A DNA stretch of 64,000 nt, from assembly GCA_964247055.1 (NCBI GenBank), contig OZ176053.1, positions 11,222,001 through 11,286,000 on the forward strand, in the 5' to 3' direction. This DNA is from Paragordius varius. Its lineage: Eukaryota; Animalia; Nematomorpha. A program made the position numbers and the translations under genes. The notes under the pieces are model-generated. The model had not been told where the DNA came from. It saw nothing but the letters and a program-made list of their open reading frames with translations, and ran no database searches. Numbering within the stretch: the first letter of the stretch is position 1; each line of letters starts with the position of its first letter. Shown here one piece after another: positions 1 through 44,536 of the stretch.

Positions 1-3000
1 TTTGATATGCTTCCTGCATTTTAATACGTTCAAAATCAAATTGCCCAAGAATCTTATGATCAGGGTATTCTTTCGTGTTAAAATCGACATGTAGGTCTAC
101 GTGGGAATTCAGTTGTCTAATCGAGTCTTCATCATCATCATAGGGATTATGTCCTTGGGCATTTGCGTAGTTTTGAGATCGTTGTGCGCTCTGAGCCTCA
201 TTGTCCCGTTCTATGTGTATTTTGACGATAGCGTTCCCATTAACCTTTTCGTCTTCAGACGAATCATATTTTACGTCTATATGTAAATTTTGATCAGCTA
301 TAGAACCATGATTTGATGAATCATTTCTCACAGACACAGTGATATTCGACCATTTTGCATCATCGTTTGTTGAGTAATGGCCATGAAATTGATAATTTTT
401 AAGCCCATTTCCCAAACTGCCGTCATGATCGGCTAAAATAAGAAAATAAAATGGACCCCATTAAAACAATTCCTTAGAATATATTGCTAAATAAAATAAT
501 TTAATTACTTGTTTTTAACTTCATATTACATAGTTAAAAGAAGTATAAAATAACCTGTGTCTAATTGAGAAGATATATCAATCTCATGATTTAGTGCTGG
601 GAATTGCGTTGATTCCATTTCGGATTTATACCTCATATTATGTGCAACTCTCTTTCGATCATATTGCATATATTTCTTAATAAACAACCTAATATATTTA
701 AATATTTATTTATAAATGGAAGAAGGCGTGATGGTATAGTAGGTAGGGCGCGAGACTCTTGCACTGCGTGCCAGAGTTTGAACCCCGAAACTACGCAATT
801 TTTCCATCATCACTGTCAGACCTGGGCAGACGAGTGTTTGTTTAAGCTTTCACAACTCCGGGTACAATTTAAGTCCCTACATATATTAAAGGAAAAAAGA
901 GATTTTAAACTGTATATTATTTTGGTTTATAAATGGAAACCTTATAAAACTCAAAGTAAGAATCATATTGTAGAAATAAGTGTATTTGATAATAGAGTTT
1001 AAACTTTAAACCACAAAACGGAAATTTTTTCAAAAAATATTTAGAATTCCAAAAGACGTAAAACAGTTTTCTTGCATAAAATTTAAGGAGGATTAGATTA
1101 GATTATGCATAACGTTATGATTATTCTAGATTTGTTTATACAGTGTTTGATTTTTCTAAAAAAATAAGCAATTTAATATTGTATTCATCGAAAAAGCTAT
1201 ACTATTGATTCCGTCCTAAAATATGGCAAACGTGATCCTAGTAAAACAATTTGCATTCAGAGCAAACTAAATTATAATTATTTTGTGGCTTTTCGATATA
1301 TTTTAGTGATATTTTTTGCTGCAATCGGAACAGAATTACGTTCACAGGGATGTTTTTTCGGTTTTTAAAATCAACATCAATATTTAGTGGTATGTATAAT
1401 ATAAATTCTAATTTTTGGATAAATTTATAATTTAGACTGTTTAATTTGTAAACACAACACTATCGAAAGAACAAAAATAAAAATATCTCTAAAATATTGT
1501 TCATTTAAATAATAATTTTTGTTTCAATAAAATAATGTTGTTTTCGGACAATAATGCTTATCACATAATTACAACATTTTAATTTAATACTATTCTTTGC
1601 AAGAGGTTACTAATCCCAAATTTTAGTAAATAGTATGCCCCAAATTCAATACATATCAATAAAAAACTAAAAATATGGAATATGAAATTTCCAATGCCGA
1701 ATAACAATAAAGGTAAACCTTTGATTTTGTAATGTTTTTGTTGAATATTCCGTTTCGAATTTCAGGTCATAACTGGTAAGAGATTTTACGGTTGAACCCT
1801 CAAACGTTGCTTGAAAAGTGTTTGGTCTTATGATTGCACCTTTGAAAGAGCGTGAATATTGACTCAGCAGATCTAATTGAAATTAATAATAAATGTTACG
1901 GTTATATAACTCTAATTTTTAGTAAAGGTTATATTTACAAGTTTTAGCCGCAGGTCGTTTCATGAGATCGTTATCAAGGGTACTCGACATTTTAAATATG
2001 TAATGCGCTGGTGCATTTTTATTGGGATAAGTGATGTCATAAACGAAACCAATATCCTCTGTCCATGTTTCCTTATTTTCATTAATTTCGATAGCCATTT
2101 TATGATCGTAAACTTGCTGCTTACCATTAATAAATGTTAAATGAGTAGTTGTACGTTTAGGCGATTCTTCCCTATATTGACCTAATTAAATATTATATAT
2201 TTTCTTAGTTAAATATTATGTTTATGCAAAATAACATTTATAATTATTTATCCGACCGGTTATGTCCCAAATTCCTAGTTCAGACTTCAAGTCAACTTTC
2301 ATTGTCTTTTGGTCCAAATCAAATCTTCCATCCAAATCCGTTGTATGACTATTTTTAGATCCAGGTGTTTCAACGTGTACTTTAACTCTATATTTTGCCT
2401 CATCCTAAATAGCATAATTAATCAAAAGGTGTGCTCTTTAACAATAAAAGTAAATTTATTAACTACACTATGTCATAAATTTCATATAAAAGATTGGGAA
2501 CCTGTTTGGATGATTTTACACTAATTTCATAATGTTCTATGGTTGGATCAATCTTTTCAAGCGTTACGCCAGCCCCAAAGATTCCGGTTGGGAATTGGCC
2601 CTCCTTCTTGAAGGCAGATCCGGTGACTAAAGCCGATGGATATTGGTAGGACAAACATGCTTCCAAGCCAAATACCTTCTCAACTTTAGGTCCCGTACAA
2701 GCTTCGTTTGAATGCAAGCGGGTTGTGTCCAGCATTTCACCGTTCGATGCGATAGAAAATACCCGATTTCTAGTGATTATAAATTAATTTGGTTTTAACC
2801 TTAACCTATGTAAAATCAATGTGGCTTCTTTTCTAAATGAAAATGTGTGAATATTAATAAATACTTTTAGGACATGTCATAATGTTTCGTACTCACTGTA
2901 AATACGGGAATCTTAATTAAATATGTGATCAAATATTTTATAATTTTACATATCTTACCACAAACCGAAATAAAATGAGCTCAAAGGGTGCTATACCCTA

Positions 3001-6000
3001 GGATTTAAACATAGAAATTGAGGCTTTAGTTTATTAGCATCACACATACTAAACCTATGTTAATATATTTATAGCCCAATACATATAGAGTTTCATAACA
3101 TACTGTATTTGAAGGACGTCCATTTTGCGATCAGGTAACGTAAGTTTGTATTTCATACCACTTGATAAACTGTAATGCATATGGATGCCCAGCTCTGAGT
3201 TTGTGTGAATCAAAGTTGAAACTCCCACACCCGATAGACTTATGCCCATAAGAGATACCGAAGCTTGAACATACACGGCAGCGCTATTATTTTAATTACA
3301 TAATTTATTTGAATCGTAATTTTTAAAAAAATAAAATGAGAGGTTTAGTATCAACCTGGGTTTAATGGTTCCTTTCAATTGAATTTCTTGATTAAGGACC
3401 AAGTTATTCATATCGACGTATCCCATGATACCAATGTCCGTCACTGCGGCAGATTTTATAGTTATGTTTAGTGGGAACCCCAATCCGGTTGTAACTATAG
3501 CAGAATTATCTGCCAATAAAGTTGACTCCGTAAAACTTGTTTCCTGAAAATTAATGACAAAAATTATATGAAAAAATAAATTTTCTCCATAATGTTATTT
3601 TATGAAGGAAATAATTTTTTTATACCCGATATTTGGAAAACTGTTTGAGTTTCTGGAGAGCGGAAACAGGATCGGACATAATATTTTGAATATCACTACC
3701 CAAAATATCCCAAAATAAAATTTCTTTCCCACCCAACTTTAGAGATCCTAAGGCTTGAGCTTTATCGAGGTTCGGATCAGTTAATATTTTTAACATGGAG
3801 CTAATTAATTTTGAGCCCACTTCTGGCAAGCTTTCTTCCAAGCGGTTAGATCTATCATTGTTTTTCTGGCCTGCATTTTGTCTAATTTATGCAGAGTAAA
3901 TTAATTTCAATTCCAATATAAAAAATAAAATTCTCTAATATTTCAAAATAACACGATAGTGTCGCTTATACCTTTTTCTTCGTTGAATATTGTTGGACAA
4001 CTGATTTTGTTGTTGGGAAGACTGTGCAGACTGCAATTGGAGTAGGTTTAAAAGGGCATTTTGGTTTAGATTATTTTGTTGAGATGATTGGCTATTAGCT
4101 TGAGCAGCAAGGACATTTAGTTCATTGGTTAAAAGAGCTGTGGTCTCTAAATCCAAAGCAACCTAAACATAACAAAGCTCTGAAATAGTTTTACTAAATA
4201 AAAAATTATCGTTCAAGTTTTTTTCATTCATTTAATAATTGATATATTCAGGTTATTATAAATCTTACATCAATAAGGTTGTAATTGATCCCAAATACGT
4301 TAGCTTTTAATGCTAAACGGGCACTATTTATTCGGTCTTGATGGTAAAAGATGTGACCCTCACTGACGAACCCAGAATTAACTAATTCGTTGTGGAAAGA
4401 TTGTTCAAAATATTTTGAGAAGTGATGAGGATTTTCAGATTGTTGTCTATAAATTTTTAAAAATAAATAAAATCTATTTATTAAATATATGAATTAGAGT
4501 GACGAGAACGTTAGAAACATGTGTCAGAATCTATTTTTAACCTTTGGTTTCCATTATTTTTATTATTAGCATCATTTGCATCTGTATAGTAATTTGCATT
4601 GTTTAAAATTTGCTCTACGTGCGGTTCAATGGCACCCAACATATTCATTTCGCCAACCATTAATCGTAACTTTTCTTTTTGTGGGTCGGTACTTTCATTT
4701 ACATTTTTGTAAAAGGAATACACAAGAGTGGCGACTATTAGTTTATTGTGTAGATATAATTAATATAATTTTAAGTAATATTAATGGGTCTGCCTAAAAC
4801 TGTAGTTAAAATATTTGTAGTCTGTATAATATTACCGTCTCGATTGGCTTCATGTCTTAACGTTTCCCTAATCTCGTGCAAAGCCGCAGGGGTAGGGCAT
4901 TGATGAATCAATAAAAATGCACGCATTCTTATTTCGGCATCATTCCCTTGACTGAACAAATCTAGTAAATGTTTTTGGGCCTGACAAGGCATTTTTCTCA
5001 AAGATTCAACGGCTGCCACTTTTAGCTTGTGAGGAACGTATTGGTTTTGGAAGCATGTCACAACATGCGGAATTAGATTTGGAGAGAATCCTAGGTTCCC
5101 GAGTGATTTAAGTGCCGCAAAAGCCTTTTTGATAATTTTTTTTAAGTTATTATATTCAATGTCATTTATTAGTTATATATAATTATTATACGATTCTTAC
5201 TTTTTCCGCATTTCGGTCAGTGTAACTCGAACCACTGCAGGAATGCGTTAATGTTTGGGCAATATAATTGTGTAATTCCCTAGCCTCTGGGACATTTTGT
5301 AGATCTTGATAAAAAGGATTTGTTCTCGCCAGGTTATTTAGTAGGCTGGAGTATGCCAATGTAACGCTATCATCGCTTGAAAAAGCATTCATCAAAGGCT
5401 AATTAGATGAAACCGTAAAAAACGATATTTTGCGCCCAAATTAAAATCAAATATGTAATTGGAAATCAATATGTAGTTAATACAAAATTAAAATTAAAGA
5501 TAAAATTAACATAAAATACATTTAATGCATTGATCATTTCTATAGTTGGTTCAGGAATGAAAGATAGCGCAATTATCCAGTATTTAGCATGTCCTCTGGT
5601 AACAGCTCCACTTTCATATAATTTAACTATGGCTCCTATAGACTCCAAGGTTTGGGCCATAGGAACGGCATCAATGTAATGTTTGCTAAAATATTATTAC
5701 ATTGTCAAACTTTGGGTAAAAATTAAATTTAAAAATTTTGGCAGTTTATATTATCAGGTTTTATGCTTAAATATTTTCTGTTTGATTATCCAGTTTAAGT
5801 AATATAAGATCATTATGTTACACATCAATTTGTATACATGCGTTTTACTTAGCTTTACATTAATATAGTTAGGCATTTAAAATTTAATTAAAAAAAATAA
5901 TATTTATTATTTAACTTTACATTAATATAGTTAGGCATTTAAAATTTAATTAAAAAAATAATATTTATTATTTAGCCATATGAACGAATGATTGCGTCTA

Positions 6001-7698
6001 TTTAATGTAACTTAAATAGAGAAAACCTCGTATTGCTTAATATAATAGATAAATCATTCATTTATTTAGCCTATATAGTGTCCAATCTCCGATATTTAAT
6101 TGGAGCAGACTAATTTTATTTAAGTCACAATATATATATATACTAGGCTTTTTCGTGGAGGGATTCTGTGGACCATTGTGCATGTGAGTTACCATGGCTA
6201 TTTCTATTTCGATTTTTCGAATTCTCATTATTTTGTCTAAAAGAGGATCGTGATTGACTTCGGGCAGAGTCATCGGCATCCTGATTATTGTTTGGATTAC
6301 GATTTCGGTAATTATTGGACTTTTTTGCGTCTTTTGATGCCAAACTCTTTAATTCATGGTATAAATCTTGTATGGCCTGAGTTGATAAAGTGCGAACCGA
6401 TTCAACAAGTCGCAAAAATTTATGCGGGCTTTCCGGTTGAATTCCTACATCCTTGGTGTCTTGTGCCATGTCATATAATATATCTTTGGTCGGTTGAGTG
6501 TCGGATTGTTTTATCGAATACCTTTCTTCGTAAAATGATGATGATGCAGCCAAGTCAGATTCGATCACTAAAATGGGGTAAAAAATAATCTTAGCTTGAC
6601 TCTTTCACATTCTTTTACGTTAAGGAAAACGATATATTATTGTAAAATATACTTAATGATCATTTTGCTAAATAATAATTTAATCTAATCATTTTATATC
6701 ATTGTCAGAACAGCCCAATTTAATTTATGTATGCAAATATTAAAAAGTAAAAAATTAGTACTTTATAATGTTTATGCTAAATAATGAACTAGAGGGAATT
6801 AATCACTTTAAAAATATTCTTTGCCCGTATCAGTGGTAATCAAAACCAATGCCCACGGGTCGCATTAAAAGTGCTTTTTTATGACCTTGAATTGATTAAA
6901 TGAATTTATTCTCCTATTTAGAGAATAAATATCCGAAAATGTGTCAAACAATTATGAATATTTATCGGTATTATATAGTTCTCTTTGAGACAAGAAATAT
7001 ATATTTTTAGCCATTTAAAAGGCCTATTTTATGCATAATAAAACCGTGTTTGTCCTCCACAAAATAATACCAGATGAAAATATTTGACTAAATTTTGGAT
7101 AAAAAATAAAATAAGGCAATGCATCCCTGCATTTTGGGGCGTCTTTTATATAATCACATGTAATTTATAAAGTTACAATTACATTATCGATAAATTATTT
7201 ACTCGGTATATTCTGGGGTCTAGTTTGAGGTGCATCGATTGACATCCATAAATTTCGGTTGTAATAATTGCCATTTCTATTTTCATTTTTCCCATAATTT
7301 GCATTATAATTTGTGTCAAATCGTTGGTGACTAACATAATCCAAAGTTTGGTACATATCAGTTACAACCTTACCCGTTTCCTGACCCAAAACCCCGTTCA
7401 ACGTTAACTTTTCACGACATTGTGATTTGGCCAACACGTTATCGTGGCTCATGAATTGTTCACATTCTTTTTTACCCTTTAGCAATGATAGCACGTTGGC
7501 TTCTCCCTTTTAAAGGAATTATAAATAAATTAACTCTACGAGCTTTACTTTCTTAAATAATTTATTTAATATTTTGTGTTGTTTTGGTTCTCTCATTGAA
7601 AGAGATACTACAAATGATCAAAAAATTTTAATTAGTTTCATTTAATCTAATTTTTTTATTTATAACTTACATTATTAGTTGGTATCATTAATAGTAAA

Positions 7699-7739
<41 letters not shown>

Positions 7740-9033
7740 TAAAATTTAAAAAATAATATACTCCATGCGAAACGGATGGGTTATAACCAACACTTTGAGT
7801 ATCGTAACGGTCATGTGAACATTGAGATAAATCTTTAGATTTTTGAATGCGAACTTTAAACTGTCCCGTTGGTTGCTGTGCCCTATACACAGTTTGGCAT
7901 CGCCCAGTAGTATCCTCCTAAATATATATTTTTAGATTGAAATCCCTACAAACACTAAACAGTTACACATGGTAAATCAATTAACAAATTTAATGGAATA
8001 CATATACTCTTAAAAAGTATTTGTTTGAGGCAAATTTAACCTACCTCTGTTATCGTTTCTTCTCCATTTTGATCAAAACGGCTCATTGTATTTAGAAACA
8101 GATTCAGTATACCCTTCTTAATATTTACGGCTAATGGATCATCATCTGTTGCACTGCAAACTTTTCCAATTTTTCCATCATCAAAATTGAACAATATTGC
8201 GTTTCTAAGTTAAACAGATATATTCATTTATTTTATTTAATTTTACATTTATATGGTTGATATGAAACGTATTTTAGGAGGGTAAAATAAATAGTCAAAA
8301 AGCATATAACGCTTAAAAACTAAAAGAATAATCGAAAACCTTTGCAATTCTCTCTCTAATGCTTTGTTTCTATTCGCATCGCCAGAAGAGGAGCTATCAG
8401 AAAGAGGGGCAATATGTGCATTTGTTATCTAAATGGAAATATGTCATTTATTATCCAAAAATTTTGATTTTAAAATATAACCTAATGTTTTTCTTACCCA
8501 TAGTTGATATTTACATTGATCCAAGACTCTTATATCAACATCTGCCTGGATTCTATGGCCCATCATTGGGGCCGAATTGGATGCTTGATTATTTGCGTCA
8601 ATTCGAGTATCGATATTTGCATCGTATTTGTATTGATAAATGAAATTATTTTTATAACCAAACTTTTGATTTGATTCTATATGGGATATTATTTACATTG
8701 CATCAAGTATGTAACTATTTAATCCTAATTAACACAACATTGTATTTTTTCATACTATATTAGCGTAAATCATAAAATTAAGTACATACGTGAACAATAA
8801 GCATTACAGGCTGGACCTAAATACATATAAAAGTGTGAACACAAAATTTAATTTTAAAATTAAACAAATTATTTATACCTTGTTGCAAGTTATTGGCACG
8901 ATCAGTATCGTATGATCTCTTTCGTCTTCTTTTAGATTGTCCTAAATAATGTTTTAAATTTTAAAGTCAAACTAATACAATACTATCTCTAGTGTAATTT
9001 TTGTTATTACAATTCAATTTGACATTTATATAT

Positions 9034-9069
<36 letters not shown>

Positions 9070-12000
9070 ATATAAAATAATATTAGATGGAATAAGTAAT
9101 GTTTTTTATTAGATGGATCCCTAAACTTAAAAAACTAATATTAAGGTAAGTTTTTTTCGTTTTTGTATTCTACAGTCATGTTGTCTAAAATTATGTTAAA
9201 ATATAAATATAAACACTTTAAACCTAATTTAGTTAATTCAACCATAATACCAGCAGTATTTTAAACGATTTAACAAAGAATCCAAAAAGCGGGAAAGAGT
9301 TTAAGATTTTTTACGATTTTACATTTATTTAAAAATATTTTCGTAGATAGAATGCATATTTTTAAATATGTCCCAATATTAAAGATACTTCTAATAAGTC
9401 TATATTGCAAAGTGAAGGAAAAATTAGTTTAAAAAATAATGAAATGGTAAATACCGTAAGGTGCACATGTTTGTAAGCACTCTGCTTTGGTTATAAAATT
9501 ATTGCCATTTGAATGACAACCGCCATAAATGAATTGTTTGCAATCTTTAGCCATAGGATCGTAATAATATCGTGGCATATATGCTTCACATGGACCCGAA
9601 TACGGTGGCAAGTGACAAATGTCGGGTAGTTGTCTTTTTTTAAGGGACTGAATATTAAGTCCAAATATTTTATACATAAACTATTTTTGATAATACGTTA
9701 ACTACTCATATAGCATATCGGGCAAATATTTTAAATATACAAGTTTTTAAGTTGCAAAATTTTCTTTTTATAAGGTCTACATATATAGCAAAAATAAGCA
9801 CAATCATATAATTATAAATATGCCTAAATAGATTAGTTATAGAGATTAATGTTAAAGTTATCATTATAATTAAGAACATTTAATTTTTTTTGCATTACTT
9901 CAGATAAATCATCTTGATAATTGGATGAACTTTCTTGGTTTTGCTCATAACGTCTGGAATTTATATAATCGTTCTGTTCATATCCCTGGTTTTTCTCATT
10001 GTCGTATAAATCTTGATTGGAGGTGCGGTACGCAGAGCAACGAGTGTCTTATTAATGAAAATTATTTTTATATAAACCTTACGTATATACTTTTTTCTCA
10101 AATAGATAAAATAATTTTATATTTGAATTCTTAAATAGTCAAAAAAGAGTTCCCGCGTCCTTCTACTATTTCTATAATTTTTTTGATCCTTGCGTATATG
10201 ATATATATGGTTTTTAACAATAGTTTCAGTGGATCTATCAATTGTTTAAATATCTTACTTTAATCATTAAAACTACATTCGACTCTAAGGAATAGTTTGA
10301 TTAAAAAGTTCTTCCCTCGACCACATAGAGGCGTAGCTTGCATTTTTGGTGCCTGGTGCATGAATCCGTGATGGCGCCCCTCCCTTACCATGCTTTGCAT
10401 TTTAAAAAAATACTCAAATTCAAACCTTGATCATGACCACTTATGAAGAGGTAATTTTTTCTATTACAGTAAATATTGAAATTATACGGAAACGTTAAAA
10501 TATAAAGACAATTGTTTTTTTCTAAAAGAAATCATACTATTTTAACCTTAATATATCCCCTATAAAACTATTTAATTACAATTGTGAAATATAGTGATTG
10601 CGTTACCAATTATCATCTCTATTTTAAACTTTGCAGTTTAAAACAACCAGTTAGTTAAAAAAAATCCACTTTTAAAAAGTATGGGTGTCTTTTGAAAAAA
10701 AATATTTATATTTTATTTTTACATTTTGTCCGTATAATTTCAATTTTTATTGCATTCAAAATAATAACTTCTAAATACCTATTTTAAATAAAAAATTTAA
10801 ATCCGGCCCCCTTCCCCCCTCTAGCTACGCCTCTACGACCACACAAAAAATATTTTTTTACTATGCTCAAAAATTGCCAACTACTGTTTTCCATTTTAAT
10901 TAACCTATAAAGCATTAAATCCGGAATCGTTTTCTGTGAAACTATATCTGGACTCGGCATAGTTATAGAGTAAACTTTTCACACTGTTTTGGGTTTATAA
11001 ACCGGACCCGCTGTTTCAATGAGAAAAAACTCCTATTTTATCAAAATCACAATTAGATCTTTCACTGAACAAGTGGCATACAATAGTCTGTGGTTCATAA
11101 ATTTATTTTTATGCGGCCGACATTTTATCAGAAAAATAGGATATCTTCTTCTAATAATAAAAACGTTTGACCGAAAAACAATGGAATCAAACTCAATTTT
11201 TTTACTAGAGCTGGAATTTGCCAAATCGCTTTTTTAAATACATAATATGTAAAACCAAAAATTTTTTAACAAAACCGAAACCAAAAACGTTTAATCCATA
11301 ATATATATATATATATATGTTGGATTGCATTGAAAACACTTAAATTCTTGAAAAACAATTTTCACAAATTTGTGTTATTCATTCACATGTAGCAAATATT
11401 TCATATTTTGCGAAACAAGATAGCTAAATCTTGTGTTTGCGATATGGGCTACTTACCGGGTATGGGGCCTCCATACTGGAGCTCTGATTAAAAAATCTTT
11501 ACCATTAAGCTATTTTTAAAACTAGTTTTTATCACATATACGGTGAGAATTTAAGGGATTATGGTAAAATCAAAGTATGGTAATCAACAATTTCAATTTA
11601 TTTGATGGCTGAAATTTAACGTTTTTCATTTAACCACCAACTCTATATCTTTCTTTTTATGTATTTAGCCAGAGTCACCTATGGTTTTATAATTTTGTAC
11701 ATTATATGCAAAATCATGGGTGGTTATATTAATAAAAACATACATATGTAAAAAAACTGGTGTAGCCCGTATTCAAGTTTATTTTACTTGTATTAAATTA
11801 TTTGCATAACAAATATAATATAATATAATTTTTTATTGAACGATACGTTATTGAGATATCGCAAGAGCATAATATAACACTAGCAAGTTATTTTAATTAT
11901 AAAAGTAGGGATAGTCCTATAACAAATAAAATAAATAATTTTTTGTTGATTATTAAATCTAGATTTTCTATACTAAGCCAATTTATAAACTTTTTTAAGA

Positions 12001-13348
12001 AAATAAAATTTTTTGTTTTTTCCTTTGAACTAAAAGAGATATTGTTGAGGACCCTAACATTAAGAAAACAGTGTTAATGTTATTTGCAATTTTTATTGTT
12101 GATATTTGCCTTAGTACGGCTATTTTAGGTAAAACATTTTACTTTTTTTTCCTAAGTTTGTATATTTAAGATTTAAGTAACTCGTTGACTTTTTGGATTT
12201 TGTTACTTTTAAAGTAATCTACTACGCTATACGTGCGATTTTCCCCGAAATAGACATTTTTATATAGCCCCTCTACCGAGCAGTCATAGTAAATTCTTGT
12301 GAATAGACCGATTGCCCTATTCTTTGACGATATTATAGGAATAATTTATACTTTCACAAGCGTTGCGGCATTCTTCAAGAGTATCAAATCTGTTGGGCGT
12401 ACCCACACATCCACCATACACAAAAGAAACGCACTTATTTTTTCGGGCATCAAAACCATATTGTGTCCTATATGCTTGGCATGGACCACGCTTTAAGGGC
12501 AGGTGACATACTAAAATATTTAATTGAATAATTGAAAATTGTATTTAACTAAAACACTAAATTTTGGGACTTTATATATTTCAGATAGATTATAACCTTT
12601 TGGTCTTGGTGCACAGATGTTAGTATGTTTGTTAAGTCTATTAGATAAAAGTTCCCGCCGATCTAGGTTATTTCCCTCATCTGTAAAATTATATTATGAT
12701 TTTATTGAAAAATAAAGAAAATTATTGGTTTTACCTCTACGGGTACTCCATTTATAGCTATTTTCATCTTCATTCCATAGTCTATCTTGTAAATTTTGTG
12801 AAGCTCGCTTTTGACTATGTTCTGAACAATAAACATCTTTTTAAGAACAAGTTATTAATTCACCAAAAATATTTTATTGTCACAATTATCATATTTTTTG
12901 GTAAGACTAGTGCTTATTACTAACTTAGGGCATATCTTCGATAAATTTAGACAAAATATGTGTTTTATGAAAAAATCTTTCTTAAAAGCTTTTCAAATAT
13001 ATTATGAGATTAAATGCTTGATTGGTTTAGATTTGATAGACGCCCCCTAAGTGAGCGCAAAATAACTAATATGGGAAATAAAAAACCTTATTATTGATAA
13101 CCTATGCTCAGTGTTTGGATTTTACGGTAAGAAAAATATAATTCAAACAAACAAATCAATTAGTGTCTTAGATGAATTATAAACCTCTATATTAAGCATA
13201 AATCAAGCATATGTTAAGATTTTAATATATCTTTTTCGTTAAAAAACCTTTATAAATAATCATGTAATGAAATATTTTTACTTGTAGAGATCGCAATTCC
13301 AACAAAACAAAGCAAGGGTAAGATTATAAGCGGCTTAACGTTAGCCAT
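1..13348 (-). CDS. Multi-exon large lipid transfer protein (apolipophorin/vitellogenin-like, Vitellogenin_N plus DUF1943-like region) with N-terminal signal peptide and two Kunitz domains; 3' end lies beyond position 1
   Basis: Manually spliced GT-AG exons, all in frame: 13348-13282 (MANVKPLIILPLLCFVGIAIST), 12680-12597, 12510-12352 (Kunitz), 11483-11457, 10047-9899, 9647-9455 (Kunitz), 8941-8879 (QSKRRRKRSY), 8676-8498 (FGYKNNFIYQYKYDANIDT..VLDQCKYQLW), 8428-8340, 8204-8045 (FNFDDGKIGKVC..NIKKGILNLF), 7917-7762 (EDTTGRCQTVY). Later exons overlap the ORF-track fragments at 7195, 6143, 5466, 5186, 4771 (LKSLGNLG upstream; VAAVESLRKMPC), 4511, 3935, 3620, 3292, 3055 and 2463, and an open frame continues to base 1. 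NIKKGIL, E.D..G.C.T.Y and LK.LGN.G are hallmark LLT motifs. Confidence 0.9.
5853..5972. repeat. Intronic tandem duplication, about 62 bp x2
   Basis: ctttacattaatatagttaggcatttaaaatttaattaaaaaaa(a)taatatttattatttt starts at 5853 and again at 5915. Confidence 0.9.
7705..7733. repeat. (AT)n microsatellite (representative)
   Basis: Pure AT run; similar runs near 9036, 11301, 17905, 23671, 26948, 32238, 47797, 54293 and 63968. Confidence 0.9.
8879..8941 (-). CDS. Linker exon with tetrabasic furin-type site between Kunitz region and LLT domain
   Basis: tag|GA CAA TCT AAA AGA AGA CGA AAG AGA TCA.. = GQSKRRRKRSYDTDRANNLQQ; phase 1-1; matches the R-X-K/R-R consensus. Confidence 0.82.
9455..9647 (-). 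CDS. Kunitz/BPTI domain exon 2 of the LLTP gene
   Basis: SLKKRQLPDICHLPPYSGPCEAYMPRYYYDPMAKDCKQFIYGGCHSNGNNFITKAECLQTCAPY; cag acceptor at 9650-9648, gt donor at 9454; phase 0-1. Confidence 0.95.
10326..10835. mobile_element. Non-autonomous hAT-like element (MITE) with 12-bp TIR and 8-bp TSD in an intron of the Kunitz-LLTP gene
   Basis: TIR tagaggcgtagc (10326) / gctacgcctcta (ends 10835); flanking direct repeat cgaccaca at 10318-10325 and 10836-10843. An 8-bp TSD is typical of hAT elements. A related end (cagaggcatagctgggg) occurs near 25876. Confidence 0.85.
12352..12510 (-). CDS. Kunitz/BPTI domain exon 1 of the LLTP gene (not in the ORF track)
   Basis: tag|TA TGT CAC..: VCHLPLKRGPCQAYRTQYGFDARKNKCVSFVYGGCVGTPNRFDTLEECRNACE; six Cys in Kunitz spacing, F.YGGC and N.F motifs; phase 1-1. 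Confidence 0.93.
13282..13348 (-). CDS. First coding exon (signal peptide) of the Kunitz-LLTP gene
   Basis: ATG at 13348; MANVKPLIILPLLCFVGIAIST has a basic N-terminus and hydrophobic core; phase-1 donor gtaaaa at 13281. Confidence 0.8.
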
Positions 13349-17949: not shown

Positions 17950-18517
17950 CGCTAGAGATTTTGTGGGAAAAGCTAACATTTCCAAAACGACTGAGTTCAT
18001 TTATGATATGAGTACAGAAATTATGATAAACTTGTGTTTGGTTCATATGTAAAATATAAATGTGTAGGAACAGATTAATCTAAAAATATTTGCACCCTAA
18101 CATACGAGTGTGCGAAAATGTTATGATGCGAGTTTTTTCGAAATTAAATTTAATTATTTCCCTTAACGAAGACAGTTATTTATACAGTTAAAACAATGTT
18201 ATTAATCATTTTTTGAGGAATTATAAACTATGAAATACATATTTTTATAATTGATAGCTAGATTTTTAATTTCACATGTGTTATGTTAAATAAAAAATTA
18301 GTTTGAATGAAATATCAATTATATCAAGATGAATGGAAAAAATGATTTATGCAATATATAAAAATGGAAAAAGAGGAGGAGTCAAAAACCTTTTTTATGA
18401 CTATATAAATATTGAAAAAATTTGTTAAAATTATAATTCATTTTGTCGGCCAATTCTTTTCTCTTCTTTAATCAAAAGTATATAAATTTTATTTTTTTGC
18501 ACACCAAAGCCTCAGAA

Positions 18518-21500
18518 ATGTTAAGAGTGTGTTTGGTTGGACTCCTTATTGCATTTGTTGCAGGTTTCATTATATTTCATTGTAATGCGTAGCCAGTCCA
18601 AGTGTACAAAAACGATCTCAATTATCTTTCCAACGTTCCCAAGATCAATCTCAGCTAAATTGGGCAAAGGATCAGGCATTATCATCTAATAAAGGTAAAT
18701 TATTTAGAATAGTTTAGTATTACTAATGTACGTGGTTATTTAAAGATTTTAATCAGAGGAGAACTGGAAAAATATGCTATTTTTCGAAACATTTTTGAAC
18801 TAAAAAGCGTTTTATCAAACCGTGTATACAACCCCAAGCTCGGTTCATATTTGCTAAATTTTTCCCACTTAAAACCCTACTTTAAAAACTTATAAAATAT
18901 GATTTTTGACTATGTCGTTAGATGCCGAAAAAAATAAAACTTTGAATTTATATTGCTTATATTAATTTTATATACTAACACAAAAAAGCAAATCAAAATC
19001 ATAGAAGTATTTAGAAGTGCATTAATATTGTTAAAATTTCAGATCCTTAAGAAAACATAGGCGTGCTTAATTTTGACTTCAAAATACAGTTGATATACCC
19101 TAAAATTTTTGAAGAATTCTAAATATTTATTGCGCATTCCCAATATAAAAAAGTAAATCGAGATCATTAAATGATATGTAATGGTTAAAATTTAAATGTC
19201 TTAGTCTAGGATATTTTAGATTAATATATTTAACAGTTTAGATGTCTATATTTTATTGAATTTTATAATAAACTTATTGAACATTTTTATAATGTTTAAT
19301 TCTGGATGCAAAAAATTAACTATCCAGTTAGTAGAAACTGCTGTCCTGCACAAATGAGTGTTGTGGGAAAGCATTATAATGTGGAATCGAATCCGGTTAT
19401 ATACCCGGATTTTTTGGCTCTATTTTCCGCCCTTGTTTAAACTTATTTTGATATTAAATTAATGCATTATTATGTTGTTTGTATAAAAGTTCATAGTATA
19501 CATTACATATGTTAAATCGAGTGAGAGTTAGGGATTTTAAAAAAATATATGTTCTAATACTTGTGTACAAAAATAACCTGAGTTTCAAACAGTTTTAAAA
19601 AAAGCAACCCAAAATGAGGAAGTTCCTGGACGGATGGAAACTGGTCTGTTTACTAAGAATTTAATATCCAACTCACCTTGCTCATTTTTTTGTTATGAGC
19701 AATTGATTATGGACGATATAGTTTATACCAGATCCTTAATTTATAAAACTGTGGCTCTCTTTAATGTTGGTAAAATATTTAAAAAAATCAACATGACTCC
19801 ATTTTAATCGGATACGAGAAAAAAATGTTAGCATATGGTAAATTTTTTAAAAAATAATATTTAAACAAAAATTTAAAATTATAATGGTCATTCCATTTTG
19901 ATAGTAAACTAGAAAAATATTTACAATTAATATTTAAAATAATTTGAATAATTTTTTTCAAAAATAAAAATATATGAAAACAATTTCTTTAGGAGGTACA
20001 ACCGAAACCGAACTAGTTTCTGTAATTTCTAAATGGAACCAGTGTGGTTCCTATTAGAATCGGGACCATGCTGGTTTCTCAAACAGAAGTCGAGCTGGTT
20101 CAGACCCAACAGAACCGGATCCTATTAAAATCTCAGAGCCGGGTTTTTGTTCAAATTTGAAGCCCTGAAATTAATTAATGGGGTGAAAATATCAATAATT
20201 ATTAAATGCAATTTGACTCATTATACTAAATCATTTATAATTCACATTACAGTTAAAGAATATTCAGATAATTATCAGCTCAATGAACAAGAAGCTGCCC
20301 ACAAAACCCAACGTAAAATATTTTAAATTCTACAAAATATCCGTAAATGTTTATGTGTAAATGGCTAATAAAAAATATTTTTAGTTGGAACCCATCCCTG
20401 CTTAGAACCAACCAAGATCGGGCCATGCTTAGCTTATATTCCAAGATATACATATAACGGAATATGGTGCACACAATTCAATTGGGGTGGTTGCCAACCA
20501 AACGGAAACAACTTTCCAACAGAAACAGAATGTAATCGTACATGTGTATGTAAGTATTTTTTAAACTTATAGATACAACTTGAATATATAATAATACCCT
20601 AACCTATAAATAAATATGATATATTTTAATACAAAGACAACGAGGATGTTTGTTCTCTTCCCACAAAAGTTGGACCATGTCGAGCTGCCATCCCAAGATA
20701 CACATATGACATAGATCTTGGAAAGTGCCGATTATTTTATTGGGGCGGATGCCAGCCTAATGGTAACAATTTTGTGTCAGCAGACGACTGCAAAAGCACA
20801 TGCGAAACGGGTATTCTTATATTTATTTTATATAAGACTGGTAACAAAATATTTATTGGATTATGTTAAAATGTTTCTTGTAAATGTGCACCCACTTAAG
20901 GCGTTTTTTTGTAGTATTTATTAAAGAATCCTATCCGTGTTAAACCAATCTAATAAATATTTAAGTTTAGTTAAATAAAACTCCTTCAAAATATTAAGGG
21001 GGTGATGTTTGTTCGTTGCCACTTAAAACTGGCCACTGCAAAGCATATTTTACACGATGGGGATTCGATACCACCAAAGGAAAATGCGTTTCGTTTATAT
21101 ATGGAGGATGTGACGCTAACAAAAACAATTTTGAAACAGAAGAAGAATGTGAATCCCAATGTGGAGGTTTTTGCATTTCGTTATAATTACGCTATGTAAT
21201 ATTGGGTTTATCGATAAGGATGAGTTCTAGAACTGGACATTGAAAATAAAAACATGTGAGCTAAATATTTTAAAATATTTGTTAATGATAGCGTAATATG
21301 ATTTGCAATAATATTGCAGAGTGGGCCTAATTTTTAGTTCGGTTGTAACTTTCATGGACTCAAATTTTAATAGTGCTGTGCTTCTATACTTAAAATAATG
21401 GTTTAAGGGCTATATAAGATGATAATTGCAAACAAAAATGCATCAAAAAGCTGATATGGATTTACTTAAGCATGAAATGTAGTTAATTTTTGAAAATTAT

Positions 21501-23674
21501 TGTTATTTGCATCCCTACCTAGGGTACTAAAAGGCGTGTCAATTTTTAAATTTTGGCTCGTATAAAAGCTAGTTTAAAATTTATCACCATGTTTATACGA
21601 GCTTTTTAAAAATATATAAAACGATTGCACAAAAAATTCAATATAATGTGGCTTAAATTTATATCATAATAGGTTTAAATTTAATTAAACTTAACAACGC
21701 TTTCTGTAAATAAATTAATATATAATTTTTCGATTGTTTTTATTGATATTAATATAATTAAAAATTTAACATTGTACTTTATTTGATAAAAATTATTAAT
21801 ATAAACACCTATTTGTACGGAAATTTTTTTTCGAATTCTAAAAGGGTATCCTAACTTTATTTAACGAAATACCAACAGATCCTGAAATTCGACTCTCTTA
21901 TATAAAAAAATAATATAAAATTTGAATAAAAACAAACCGTTGATTTAACTTAATTATATACATATTAAAATAATAATTGTAAATTTGATTCACAGATCTA
22001 ATATAGCGTCAAAAAACTCATCTTATCAATTCAATGCAATCAGATACCTATATGTAAATTTATTTAGTCAACTATATCAATGTTTTTTGTTTTGACTAGG
22101 TATTCGTTATCCAAAAATAAAAGACTTTTTTTAGGTGCATCTTTTAAGATTTATCCATTAAAAATTACTTAGATATTAATGTATTTTATAAGCTTACATA
22201 TGTATTATTGTTTTTCTCATAATGAAGAGATTAAATCAATTTACATTGTTTTAATAAAAGAAATAAACCTACCTATAGGACCATATAGCAAACACGATAA
22301 ACCTTCATCACACTATTACCAGAAAAACGCTGACGACAACGATGATGATGATAATGAAGACTCATCCCAATTTTCAAATCCACAATATGGGAATGAACAG
22401 AACGAAAATCAGAATTGGAGGTACAATCAAAACCGCTTAAGCAATAACCAAAGAAACTTGAATGAACGCAACAATGAGGAAAATGATGACGATGACCGTA
22501 ATGCTCGCCGTCTTGATTACAATGAGGATCAAAGAGGAGAAAATCGAAATTGGCAACAACAACAACAACAACGTTGGAGAAGTTCAAGCAATTCTCAGTG
22601 GCTACAAGGTTCAAACGCCAATGAAGATGAGAATGAGCCAAATGCCCCTTCGGGTTCGGAAACACGAAACCAACGATCAAAATATGAGAATGAGTATAAT
22701 GCTGATGATGATGCCCGCGAAAACGAAGATAACTTTGCAGATAATTTAGAACAAGATGAACGAGAGAATGAAAGACAGGATAGAGCAAGGCAATGGTTGT
22801 CCCCTTCAAACAATCAACAACAACCACAGCAGCAACAGCGAAACCAACAAAGTTGGAGAAGTCGGGCAAATGCTGCTTTTGATCCCACTGACGATGACAA
22901 TGATGACGATGACAATGATGATGACAATGACAATAAGCCTAATGCAGCAGCCAGACCGAGAGATCGATATGAACAACAAGCAGACAGTGACGATGACACC
23001 GACCAATATAATGAAAGGCAATACCCATATGCCAATAGAGATTCGGGACCAGATAGAAATCGGAACCAAGGTATATTACTTTACTATCTATCATCATATT
23101 TATATGATTATGCGTCCCAAGTTGCTTTTATGTTGGCCAATTGGCAATAAATATATGGGTAAAAACAACAAACGATTAAAATTACAACATAAAATGTTTG
23201 TTTAATTATATGAACAAAATTTTATATAATGCACTAGGGTATTACCAATTGGCCAGCATAAATTTCTAAGTGATAATTATTGAAACATGCTATATAATGT
23301 TATACGCATAATACACAGTGATTTTGGATGAAATTAAGAATATTGAGATTTTAATGGTTTAATTTTTGGGTAAATATCATAATTGAGCTGATAGAATATG
23401 TCATTATTTTAAAATTGACCAATATCAAAAAATATCCAAATCAAATCCGGCCATAATTTTTTTAGAAAAAAAACTAATTGTTTTAAAAATTGTAATTTTA
23501 CATGATTTTCTATTGATGAGTTCAAAATATTTTTAATAAAATACCTTACCTTACAGAACAAAAGGGATTGCGCGATAAAAATAAATATAAACTACAAAAT
23601 CTGCTTTCAATCCAAATTTAGCAACATTTTTTAACGGAGTTTGCATTATGTCCGGTTTAAAGCGTGTTATACAT

Positions 23675-23706
<32 letters not shown>

Positions 23707-25124
23707 CACTTGGAAGGCATTCATTTCAGTCCTTCGATTCGAATTGGGGTAGTTAGATCCAGGCCTGTTTAAAAAAAATACTTCAAGAAATATGGAAGGA
23801 ATTGAAACCATTGCAAAATGCACTTATAAATCATTTATAAACCGAAATATTGAAAAATTTATTAAAGGTAAAAATTTAGTGAAGACATATGTGCATTAGC
23901 AAAATTCGAAAATAATACAAATAAACCACTATTTCTGTTTCTCTCATTATAACATGTGATTTAAATAAAAAATTAGCTTTACTTTTAACTTTAAAATTAA
24001 ATAAACCCGATATTTTGCAAAAATATTTAATGACGTCGACCTAGTTTGATATGGAACTTTTTATAAAACCAAATTTTATTTAGATATTTCGACTTATTTA
24101 TATATATAATTTTTATTAGGATAGTAGCATAAATTTATATTGCTGTTTCTCTCAGTAGTTTTTTAAAATTTTCAAATTAAATAAAGTGTGGGGTATTTAA
24201 ATACCCCAATTGGAATCGAAGTGCTAAAACTTATTCTCCATTAATGTCACTGAAAATATATAAACACTCATGAATTTATTGGAAAAGCAACTGTTTTGCC
24301 TGAAAATATAAATATTTTTAATATAAGTGCGGATTAGGACATTTTTTATTTTAAACAATTATAAAATTGATAACTGTATTAAATATACGAATTTTGATAC
24401 TTTATTATTCTGCTTACTCAAGGAATTGAATACTTCCGTCGCTACAGCCGATGTTAATATTTAACTAAATCGCTTTTACCATTAAATGATTTAAAGATCA
24501 TATATATTACGTCTTAATCCAATTAACATACAGTCTATCATTTTTAGCATAATTTTTGAAGCTTTTTTTATTTTGTTTAAATATGTATCATGATCCAAGA
24601 ATTTAAATAAAATTTAAAAATGAAATGAAAAAATAATGTTTAATTGTATCCACAAGAACTCTTGTAAATTTGGCCCGTTGGTTAAGGAATTTAATTTAAG
24701 GAACCATAGAACTTATTATTATACAAAATCTACAATTATATCAACGAAACTCTTGATCTATTTAAACTATTTAGGTGATAAAATTTAGTTTTATGTTATT
24801 TAGATATTTTTAGATTGAAGAAACGATAACGCAATTCAAACATATTTTTATGTATTTAATTTAAACTATTTTTTATATAAGATATTTTCAAATAGAGTAA
24901 TAAAATAACTTGTAAAAACAGATATATGTACCCAACCGCCTAAAATGGGACCTTGTAAAGATTTTATTCCCCGCTTTTTCTACAATCATGAAACTGGTCA
25001 GTGCCAAAGTTTTATATACGGGGGTTGTCAATCTAATAAAAACAATTTCGAAACTTTTCACGAATGTCAACGGACATGCATTTTGGGTTTGACTTTAAAT
25101 AACTTTAAAATTTATAAGCCGTAA
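18518..25124 (+). CDS. Secreted multi-Kunitz protease inhibitor-like protein (4 Kunitz domains plus a long acidic N/D/Q-rich region)
   Basis: Exons: 18518-18563 (MLRVCLVGLLIAFVA), 18593-18694, possibly unassigned small exon(s), 20268-20312, 20385-20549 (HPCLEPTKIGPCLAYIPRYTYNGIWCTQFNWGGCQPNGNNFPTETECNRTC), 20637-20810 (VCSLPTKVGPCRAAIPRYTYDIDLGKCRLFYWGGCQPNGNNFVSADDCKSTC), 20999-21166 (VCSLPLKTGHCKAYFTRWGFDTTKGKCVSFIYGGCDANKNNFETEEECESQC), 22279-23070 (low complexity), 24922-25124 (ICTQPPKMGPCKDFIPRFFYNHETGQCQSFIYGGCQSNKNNFETFHECQRTC, stop TAA 25122-25124). All junctions are phase 1. The 5' end and the final exon end are less certain. Confidence 0.85.
22279..23070 (+). CDS. Low-complexity Asp/Asn/Glu/Gln/Arg-rich exon of the four-Kunitz gene
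   Basis: Internal part of ORF 22179..23150; acceptor cctatag at 22278, donor gtatat at 23071; poly-D, poly-Q and DDDN repeats. The overlapping ORFs in other frames and on the other strand are by-products of the triplet repeats. Confidence 0.85.
23127..23262. repeat. Small fold-back element (23-bp inverted repeat around an AT-rich core)
   Basis: tttatgttggccaattggcaata (23127) vs tattaccaattggccagcataaa (ends 23262); 2 mismatches to a perfect inversion. Confidence 0.7.
23706..24230. mobile_element. MITE-like element, family A copy 1
   Basis: Inverted ends ttcgattcgaattggggta / taccccaattggaatcgaa; internal sequence is clearly similar to 39520-40090. Confidence 0.75.
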
Positions 25125-43534: not shown

Positions 43535-44536
43535 ATGTGTAAATTGGTTGTAAAACTCGTATTTAGCATAACGATTCTCATTTGCAAATTAAGACAAATT
43601 AATTCTAGTGATAATATCGAATTCTATTATCGGGACCATGATTGTCCCGAAATTTGGTACCGAAAATATCCAAGTTGTGGGACGGCAGATAGCTTAAAAA
43701 AATCTAAGCTTCTTCAATCACCTATCGACTTATCTGATCCAATATATAATGCGACAATCCCTCCCATCAAACTCAAAAATTATGACCTAACTATTGGAGA
43801 GTGGACATTAGAAAAAACTCAAACAACGTTAGTTATAAAAGTTGAGGGAATCTTACCTTTTATCGATATCCCAAAATCATATGAATTCCAACAGGCTCAC
43901 TTTCATTGGGGGATGGGCGGGAGAAGCCTCATAGGATCAGAACATGCACTAGATGGAAAATTTTATCCACTTGAAGTACATTTAGTACACAAGGACAAGG
44001 TTTCAGGGCAAATAGCTGTTTTGGCCATCTTTTTTGAGTATTCAAGCAAGAAAACTGATAAAGACAACCCTAAGCTTGATCCTATATTTGAGACACTTGA
44101 TATGGATATCAATAATAAGGATTATGGAAGGACTGGAGGTACGCCTAAACTCAAAATTCGATCCAAATTTGCGTTACAAAACTTATTACCCGAAAAATGG
44201 GGTTCATTTTACAGGTATGAAGGATCATTAACCACTCCCCCTTGTACCGAAGGCGTTATTTGGTCTATTCTCAGAGATCGTAATTACATATCGCGTAGAC
44301 AAATGTTTCTGCTTGAACGATTACAGCAGTGTAATGAACATCATAAAACATGTTACGCCAGGACTTCAATTGGACCGAATTATAGGCCAATGCAAGCTAA
44401 GAATAATCGACCCGTATATTTATATAGTCCAGAACCGGAATATAGCATATCCCTGTCAGAGTCCACATACCAAGCTCTATATGCCAAATCTATTATCACA
44501 TTATTAACGTCTGTAGTACTGTATTTCATTTTGTAA
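43535..44536 (+). CDS. Alpha-carbonic anhydrase, secreted/GPI-anchored type, single coding exon
   Basis: 333 aa ORF with N-terminal signal peptide, QSPIDL, Zn ligands QAHFHWG and EVHLVH, SEH, YRYEGSLTTPPCTEGVIW, NYRPMQ; the conserved disulfide Cys pair (YPSCG/PPCTE); C-terminal hydrophobic tail (IITLLTSVVLYFIL*). Confidence 0.95.
   Translation: MCKLVVKLVFSITILICKLRQINSSDNIEFYYRDHDCPEIWYRKYPSCGTADSLKKSKLLQSPIDLSDPIYNATIPPIKLKNYDLTIGEWTLEKTQTTLVIKVEGILPFIDIPKSYEFQQAHFHWGMGGRSLIGSEHALDGKFYPLEVHLVHKDKVSGQIAVLAIFFEYSSKKTDKDNPKLDPIFETLDMDINNKDYGRTGGTPKLKIRSKFALQNLLPEKWGSFYRYEGSLTTPPCTEGVIWSILRDRNYISRRQMFLLERLQQCNEHHKTCYARTSIGPNYRPMQAKNNRPVYLYSPEPEYSISLSESTYQALYAKSIITLLTSVVLYFIL

Follow-up and report, generated by a model that had tools for sequence, protein, structure and literature searches.

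Few large secreted proteins of animals are as conservative as the large lipid transfer proteins (LLTPs), which include apoB, apolipophorin, vitellogenin and MTP, and add-on modules are rare in them. In crustaceans, the dLp/HDL-BGBP co-precursor carries an LLTP and an unrelated module in a single open reading frame (ORF), and its parts are split by a convertase. In Daphnia, a vitellogenin is likewise fused, in one ORF, to a superoxide-dismutase (SOD)-like domain. Each of these add-ons has informed how lipoproteins are used. Here we analyse a locus of the hairworm Paragordius varius (Nematomorpha), which belongs to a phylum of almost unstudied parasites bathed in insect haemolymph. The DNA examined is a stretch of 64,000 nucleotides (assembly GCA_964247055.1, contig OZ176053.1, positions 11,222,001 to 11,286,000; hereafter the window, numbered from its first letter). 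Its minus strand appears to encode an apolipophorin-like LLTP in which two Kunitz domains separate the signal peptide from the lipid transfer (LLT) domain.

A preliminary description of the same DNA had pointed to this arrangement and had stated that its author was not aware of a described Kunitz-LLTP. That statement agrees with our survey: no description of such a fusion was found in the literature searched, no Kunitz-like motif occurs in any of 243 LLTP-type proteins fetched, and PF00014 is absent from the precomputed Pfam lists of the 120 best apolipophorin-like matches. Together these proteins form our sample of known architectures; the 120 best matches include proteins from a priapulid, nemerteans, annelids, molluscs, arthropods and hemichordates, as well as many derived from transcriptomes. 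A new combination is no surprise in kind, because few modules of secreted animal proteins are as mobile as Kunitz exons.

The gene model was obtained by splicing the minus strand by hand from 13348 to 7762. It contains 12 exons, with GT-AG introns throughout, and comprises 1413 nt or 471 codons, without a stop. The intron phases are 1,1,1,1,0,1,1,1,0,2,0. The predicted chain begins with a signal peptide and two linkers, followed by Kunitz 1, a linker rich in N, D, Y and Q, Kunitz 2, a linker containing KRRRKR, the product of a microexon and the LLT domain. Eleven exons and ten phases had been counted previously. The reading frame given then was correct and the count was not, the microexon e8 having been overlooked and the exon at 8941 joined straight to 8676; the frame was unaffected because e8 is 27 nt long and lies in phase 1-1.

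Exon e1 (13348-13282) provides the start codon and the signal peptide and ends in phase 1. The signal peptide was assigned by eye from the sequence, which has a Lys at residue 5, a 15-residue hydrophobic core and the small residues A-I-S ahead of the likely cut. Two phase 1-1 linker exons follow: e2 (12821-12735) encodes 29 basic and acidic residues with dibasic motifs, and e3 (12680-12597) encodes 28 residues, including an extra Cys located 7 residues ahead of Kunitz 1. Kunitz 1 is a single domain in a single exon (e4, 12510-12352, phase 1-1). Exon e5 (10047-9899, phase 1-0) encodes the N/D/Y/Q-rich linker and opens with another extra Cys, 5 residues past Kunitz 1; its acceptor is the least certain boundary of the whole model. 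In e6 (9647-9455, phase 0-1) the motif LKKR (9644-9633) precedes Kunitz 2. Exon e7 (8941-8879, phase 1-1) encodes a 21-residue linker in which KRRRKR (8933-8916) is followed by Ser, and e8 (8816-8790, phase 1-1) is the 27-nt microexon, which encodes GPACNAYCS with the CxxxC motif found at the start of mature apolipophorins. The four remaining exons, e9-e12 (8676-8498, 8428-8340, 8204-8045 and 7917-7762), encode the start of the LLT (Vitellogenin_N) beta-barrel. The rest of the LLTP within the window occupies 1-7761 of the same strand, with approximate exon borders, and the gene continues past the window start. Within this part, the helical portion of Vitellogenin_N reaches 4774, Vit_open_b-sht extends over 4493-3295, and a QRRKR motif lies at about 3985-3972, its final codon being completed at 3881. 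The downstream exon chain came from a dynamic-programming script; it includes doubtful small exons and was used solely for approximate residue numbers. On this basis, the rough extended model has about 1,700 residues up to the window edge, with the downstream exon borders being approximate.

Both Kunitz domains score far above the curated PF00014 (Kunitz_BPTI) cut-off of 21 bits. Kunitz 1 gives 65.8 bits (E 4e-18) over positions 2-53 of the 53-position profile, and Kunitz 2 gives 76.6 bits (E 1.7e-21) over positions 1-53. The six-Cys spacing C-x8-C-x15-C-x7-C-x12-C-x3-C fits the two domains, and the two additional Cys, one in e3 and one in e5, flank Kunitz 1. Among proteins of solved structure, their closest relatives are SmCI, bikunin, TFPI and boophilin (PDB matches). 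The hand-spliced model and Pfam bear out the earlier proposal that Kunitz domains lie in frame between the signal peptide and the LLT domain. The claim that they are protease inhibitors stands only in part. The fold is that of the family, as judged from Pfam and the six Cys, but a trypsin-type P1 was not found: this residue, which follows the second Cys, is Gln in Kunitz 1 and either Glu (window) or Asp (other samples) in Kunitz 2. Kunitz domains with such P1 residues are frequently non-inhibitory or directed at different targets. It is from family membership that we infer an inhibitory role for the two domains.

The LLT part of the model is recognized exon by exon. Matches to Vitellogenin_N (PF01347) are collinear with the exons (profile positions 1-47, 84-123, 138-172, 303-361, 360-413 and 476-578); profile position 1 is reached at e9, and the matches to 1-47, 84-123 and 138-172 fall in e9-e12. 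Vit_open_b-sht (PF09172, profile 1-57 and 177-244) follows, giving the order beta-barrel, helical domain and open beta-sheet of an N-terminal LLT module. Relatives also carry DUF1081 (PF06448) and VWD (PF00094); the C-terminal part of the hairworm protein falls outside the window. By BLASTP, residues 270-1388 of the rough model are collinear with apolipophorins, and residues 270-470 align with apolipophorin residues 30-220 at 31-36% identity. An exhaustive HMMER search with the best-conserved LLT exon (4774-5172) retrieved distant relatives only, at 39% identity or less, and those with names are apolipophorin-like proteins from insects, a centipede, molluscs and a coelacanth; no protein entry from the same or a close species was found in this search. 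A word-indexed protein search with the Kunitz 2 frame gave a single match, a sea-anemone toxin. Long low-complexity inserts rich in N, Q and S, at 6146-6604 and 3972-4162, break up stretches of the LLT helical domain and open beta-sheet that are otherwise conserved, and make these longer than in other apolipophorins by about 100-200 residues.

The same comparisons locate the Kunitz region precisely. In BLASTP, residue 270-271 of the model lies opposite residues 30-33 of the relatives, and nothing in the apolipophorin relatives aligns with the first 265 residues. In a MAFFT alignment with 12 relatives, a CAxxC motif and an F/Y-x-Y-x-Y strand occur within about 10 residues after the signal peptides, and hairworm e8 and e9 align exactly to these two motifs. 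Across 110 long LLTPs the conserved start motif begins at residue 31 in the median and at residue 137 at the latest. In the hairworm model it begins at residue 271, so that the LLT module does not directly follow the signal peptide. The insert comprises e2-e7 (735 nt, about 245 residues), and in the predicted gene it lies where an intron normally divides the signal exon from the first mature exon. The inserted units, of 87, 84, 159, 149+193, 63 and 27 nt, are each divisible by three and in phase 1. Phase-1 units in multiples of three are the classical signature of exon shuffling.

Codon use was compared with that of 500 stop-free intronic segments of equal length, scored as log-odds in the predicted frame. 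Exon e2 obtained 15.7, a score reached by 0.4% of the null segments, and e5 and e7 obtained 29.5 and 15.5, scores reached by none of the 500. These three exons resemble the LLT exons in codon use. Support for e3 is marginal (5.6% of null segments reach its score), and e1 and e8 are too short to be judged in this way. The GC content of the exons is 0.33-0.44 (0.38 in e7), as compared with 0.25 in the introns of the gene and about 27% in the window. We also compared the contigs of four of the five sequencing runs listed as containing the locus, representing at least two samples. Among the 40 best-supported of 242 single-base differences, the LLT exons show 10 synonymous and 1 nonsynonymous difference and the signal exon e1 shows 3 synonymous and none nonsynonymous. 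The signal exon and the LLT exons are under coding constraint in their predicted frames. The 12 listed indels between samples are without exception intronic in the model (p about 0.03), and two occur within the 513-nt intron that follows Kunitz 2.

The contigs of the four runs cover exons and introns at even depth, which identifies the runs as DNA. Since they cover the locus in at least two samples, the juxtaposition of Kunitz and LLT exons is not an assembly artefact. A scan of 9454-8790 revealed no ATG exon combining a hydrophobic stretch with a phase-1 donor, in agreement with the earlier remark that the LLT domain lacks an ATG or signal exon of its own in the interval 8941-9455. Exons e7, e8 and e9 have no usable start, and the open frame of e7 contains no ATG. 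Two candidate starts for the LLTP were considered and rejected: an in-frame ATG at 8826, just ahead of e8, gives an N-terminus with no hydrophobic stretch or signal peptide, and the I/L/F-rich frames at 9879-9741 in intron 5 lie upstream of Kunitz 2 and resemble AT-rich noise. A signal peptide is indispensable for a secreted LLTP that is lipidated in the endoplasmic reticulum (ER). Because the LLTP has no start of its own, the primary transcript must begin upstream of the Kunitz exons, most simply at e1, and the Kunitz exons, with their ordinary splice sites, are consequently inside it. The polybasic motif of e7 also makes sense only behind a pro-region. We infer that the exons are joined in one mRNA, and we consider it probable, from the features of the sequence, that the locus is a single gene for a Kunitz-LLTP pre-pro-protein.

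Several observations weigh against this interpretation. The RNA runs of the species contain next to none of the locus; no RNA read or transcript spans any of the junctions, all four runs compared being DNA. Exon e1 could join e7 or e8 directly, because the inserted units are multiples of three in phase 1, and a Kunitz-only product could also be made, because a stop occurs eight codons into intron 6. In-frame isoforms that lack the Kunitz domains, or that consist of them alone, are therefore just as possible. At P1, neither domain has the Lys/Arg or large hydrophobic residue of canonical serine-protease inhibitors, and Gln and Glu/Asp at this position argue against trypsin-type inhibition. Among the listed single-base differences, the Kunitz 2 exon shows 5 nonsynonymous and 1 synonymous between samples, as would a sequence free of constraint. 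Finally, the comparison includes no orthologous LLTP of a second hairworm: among the 30 LLTP matches looked up by name, none is from Gordionus, whose proteome is part of the protein collection.

Part of this evidence is what would be expected of a complex locus with a shared first exon, an organization that we regard as possible though doubtful. Such a locus would produce a small secreted two-Kunitz protein from e1-e6 and a canonical LLTP from e1 joined to e7 or e8, by alternative splicing or alternative polyadenylation, and the fused form would be rare or absent. With e2, e3, e4, e5+6, e7 and e8 all being multiples of three in phase 1, every one of the joins required stays in frame, and that of e1 to e8 would restore exactly the canonical layout seen in relatives, with the signal directly ahead of CxxxC. 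The regimes under which Kunitz 2 and the LLT exons evolve are, moreover, very different (Fisher p 0.005). However, dedicated regulation would be needed to skip five consecutive exons that have ordinary splice sites, and e7 appears to be coding, with a polybasic motif that needs a pro-region ahead of it. The read-through tail that would end a Kunitz-only product also speaks against this organization: a 1-nt deletion allele located in its T run and stop would alter the tail by 17 codons, as expected for non-coding sequence.

The variation of Kunitz 2 also bears on the possibility that the Kunitz exons are a recent insertion, neutral or decaying, which is carried in the transcript or skipped and has no function. 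We think this quite unlikely. The ratio of 5 nonsynonymous to 1 synonymous difference, P1 being among the changes, is what neutral evolution could also give (five or more of 6 have a probability of 0.53 at a nonsynonymous expectation of 0.75), and P1 is unusual in both domains. Nevertheless, both retain their six Cys, 66-77 bits over the whole Pfam profile, and intact frames and splice sites, and none of the listed indels falls in them. The replacement changes include P1 (Glu in the window, Asp elsewhere) and one residue of the preceding loop, and such an excess around the reactive loop is also a usual sign of diversifying selection in parasite inhibitors. Positive selection on Kunitz 2 was considered and dropped, the 5:1 ratio being no different from the neutral expectation; for the same reason we make no claim of decay. 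The samples contain at least three haplotypes of the Kunitz 2 exon (9455-9647). Three positions, 9582, 9585 (where P1 changes from Glu to Asp) and 9641, distinguish the window from every other sample, and only some of those samples share the further replacement changes at 9493, 9514 and 9602. A run deposited under a second organism name shows the same Kunitz 2 variants in a mixed state, and its label may mean the same species.

That two independent genes lie in tandem, a Kunitz gene ending after e6 and an LLTP gene that has an unrecognized promoter and signal exon of its own or is trans-spliced, is very improbable. Secreted Kunitz genes are numerous in the genome, one of them adjoining, and the single-gene model is itself drawn from sequence alone. 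However, only 513 nt separate Kunitz 2 from e7, with no ATG exon having a hydrophobic stretch and a phase-1 donor; the open frame of e7 offers no ATG, and a start at the ATG of 8826 would lack a signal peptide. Farther upstream, the I/L/F-rich frames of intron 5 are the sole candidates, and they would have to skip Kunitz 2.

If the locus is a single Kunitz-LLTP gene, its product would probably be processed. Three convertase-type motifs are present: LKKR (9644-9633) before Kunitz 2, KRRRKR-Ser (8933-8916) at the border of the Kunitz and LLT modules, and QRRKR (about 3985-3881) within the LLTP. The last sits between two aligned blocks of the LLTP; at that place RGKR or RQKR is present in a protein of a horseshoe crab and in a relative derived from a metagenome (P0194). 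Furin reportedly cuts insect apoLp-II/I there. The signal peptide would bring the chain into the ER, where the LLT module would be loaded with lipid; a convertase of the furin type would then cut at KRRRKR in the late secretory pathway, probably with further cuts at LKKR and at QRRKR. The products would be a lipoprotein of two chains and either one or two free Kunitz proteins, all from the same cell and, because they are cut from one precursor, released in equal amounts. The idea of a polyprotein, already put forward in the preliminary description, fits the border motif and the second motif present where some relatives have one; the part of it that concerns splicing into one message is a prediction.

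Protection of yolk from proteolysis had been suggested as a function. We view it as just one of several candidates, because Kunitz 2 shows no sign of purifying selection between samples. A role directed at the host is conceivable as a speculation, by analogy with TFPI, a Kunitz inhibitor bound to plasma lipoproteins, and with lipophorin in arthropod clotting; arthropod lipophorin and other LLTPs take part in clotting or melanisation cascades. According to this scenario, the parasitic stage of the hairworm, within the body cavity of the insect, would make the polyprotein, the lipoprotein would take up or carry host lipid, and the Kunitz proteins, their reactive loops diversifying between populations, would bind components of the protease-driven clotting or melanisation cascades of the host. 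As a whole we consider it improbable. If true, the gene for the lipoprotein would itself encode an inhibitor that is associated with the lipoprotein, built in and supplied one-to-one.

A possible origin of the Kunitz exons is found nearby. About 5 kb upstream of the LLTP gene, on the opposite (plus) strand, a head-to-head neighbour at 18437-25121 has four Kunitz exons (20399-20545, 20651-20803, 21010-21162 and 24927-25079), a signal-like start at about 18500 and a 325-residue stop-free stretch, acidic and rich in D, N and Q (22173-23147), with no Pfam match. Its product appears to be a secreted protein with several Kunitz domains, in which P1 is Leu, Arg, Lys and Lys, as compared with Gln and Glu in the domains of the LLTP. 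The three of its Kunitz exons that were inspected (20399-21162) each hold a single domain in a phase-1 exon. Kunitz 1 is 59% identical to the third Kunitz domain of the neighbour and Kunitz 2 is 55% identical to the first; Kunitz 1 and Kunitz 2 are 45% identical to one another. These similarities are suggestive of local exon duplication, with the neighbour as a possible source or sister of the Kunitz exons of the LLTP. Most likely, exon shuffling would have placed the module in the phase-1 intron that separates the signal exon from the first mature one, perhaps with this head-to-head gene as its source.

Other features of the window were also recorded. An alpha-carbonic anhydrase ORF (43535-44536, plus strand) runs uninterrupted for 333 residues, with a signal-like start and a hydrophobic tail. 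The three best matches to it come from Gordionus sp. m RMFG-2023, with 61% identity for the top one. In the Gordionus annotation the counterpart is a 1.8-kb gene encoding 255 or 315 residues, whose ends disagree with those of the 333-residue ORF. No other gene shared with the window was found in the 22-kb Gordionus carbonic anhydrase locus, so that this locus offers no synteny route to a Gordionus LLTP. The Gordionus sp. m RMFG-2023 genome has a GC content of 26.9%, near that of the window (bioRxiv 10.1101/2023.06.26.546503). The carbonic anhydrase matches point to a nematomorph whose genus or family is not that of Gordionus.

Repeated elements occur at two places. Intron 4 of the LLTP gene, 2.3 kb long, is made up in part of a very high-copy repeat (10320-10950), detected by word depth in the contigs. 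Its summed word depth is 250,000-790,000 in three runs, as compared with about 400 in the flanks, and about 2,300-4,200 against about 5 in the low-coverage run X3. It contains nested inverted arms (10442-10490 and 10729-10777, 78% complementary) and G-rich ends resembling terminal inverted repeats, and is probably a MITE-like foldback element. Fragments of a hAT-type transposase lie at 51300-52624, on both strands and in several frames, and include a Spin-doc-type zinc finger (51300-51920) and a hAT dimerisation region (52187-52621); they probably represent a decayed or intron-bearing transposon copy.

A gene combining Kunitz domains and a lipoprotein would, if confirmed, be a clear case of exon shuffling into a signal-peptide intron and would couple a lipid carrier one-to-one with a protease-binding module. 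Should the exons be used alternatively, the locus would instead illustrate how one promoter and one signal exon can serve two secreted products. Among described proteins, the LLTP part is closest to the apolipophorin-like LLTPs (APO branch), with which it shares a collinear Vitellogenin_N and open beta-sheet and the CxxxC...YxYxY start, at 25-36% identity to the proteins of molluscs, nemerteans, annelids, a priapulid and arthropods. It also shares with apolipophorins an R-x-K/R-R motif between aligned blocks, which in some relatives reads RQKR or RGKR. It differs from them by its long N/Q-rich inserts and in the position of the LLT module: 10-30 residues past the signal peptide in the relatives, whereas in the hairworm it is preceded by an insert of about 245 residues that contains both Kunitz domains and a polybasic site. 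The dLp/HDL-BGBP precursor (P0237) is among the matches in the same LLTP family; neither it nor the SOD-vitellogenin of Daphnia has a protease-inhibitor fold, whereas the hairworm add-on is an N-terminal Kunitz pair flanked by dibasic sites. TFPI, bikunin, boophilin and SmCI have tandem Kunitz domains, with a fold and Cys pattern common to those of the hairworm, and the lipoprotein binding of TFPI provides a functional parallel to co-release with a lipoprotein; the title of one PDB entry names it lipoprotein-associated coagulation inhibitor. Active domains of the TFPI type have Lys/Arg, Met or Leu at P1, in contrast to the Gln and Glu/Asp of the hairworm. Proteins of the TFPI type are separate gene products that bind lipoproteins noncovalently, whereas the hairworm Kunitz domains are predicted to be encoded in the lipoprotein gene.

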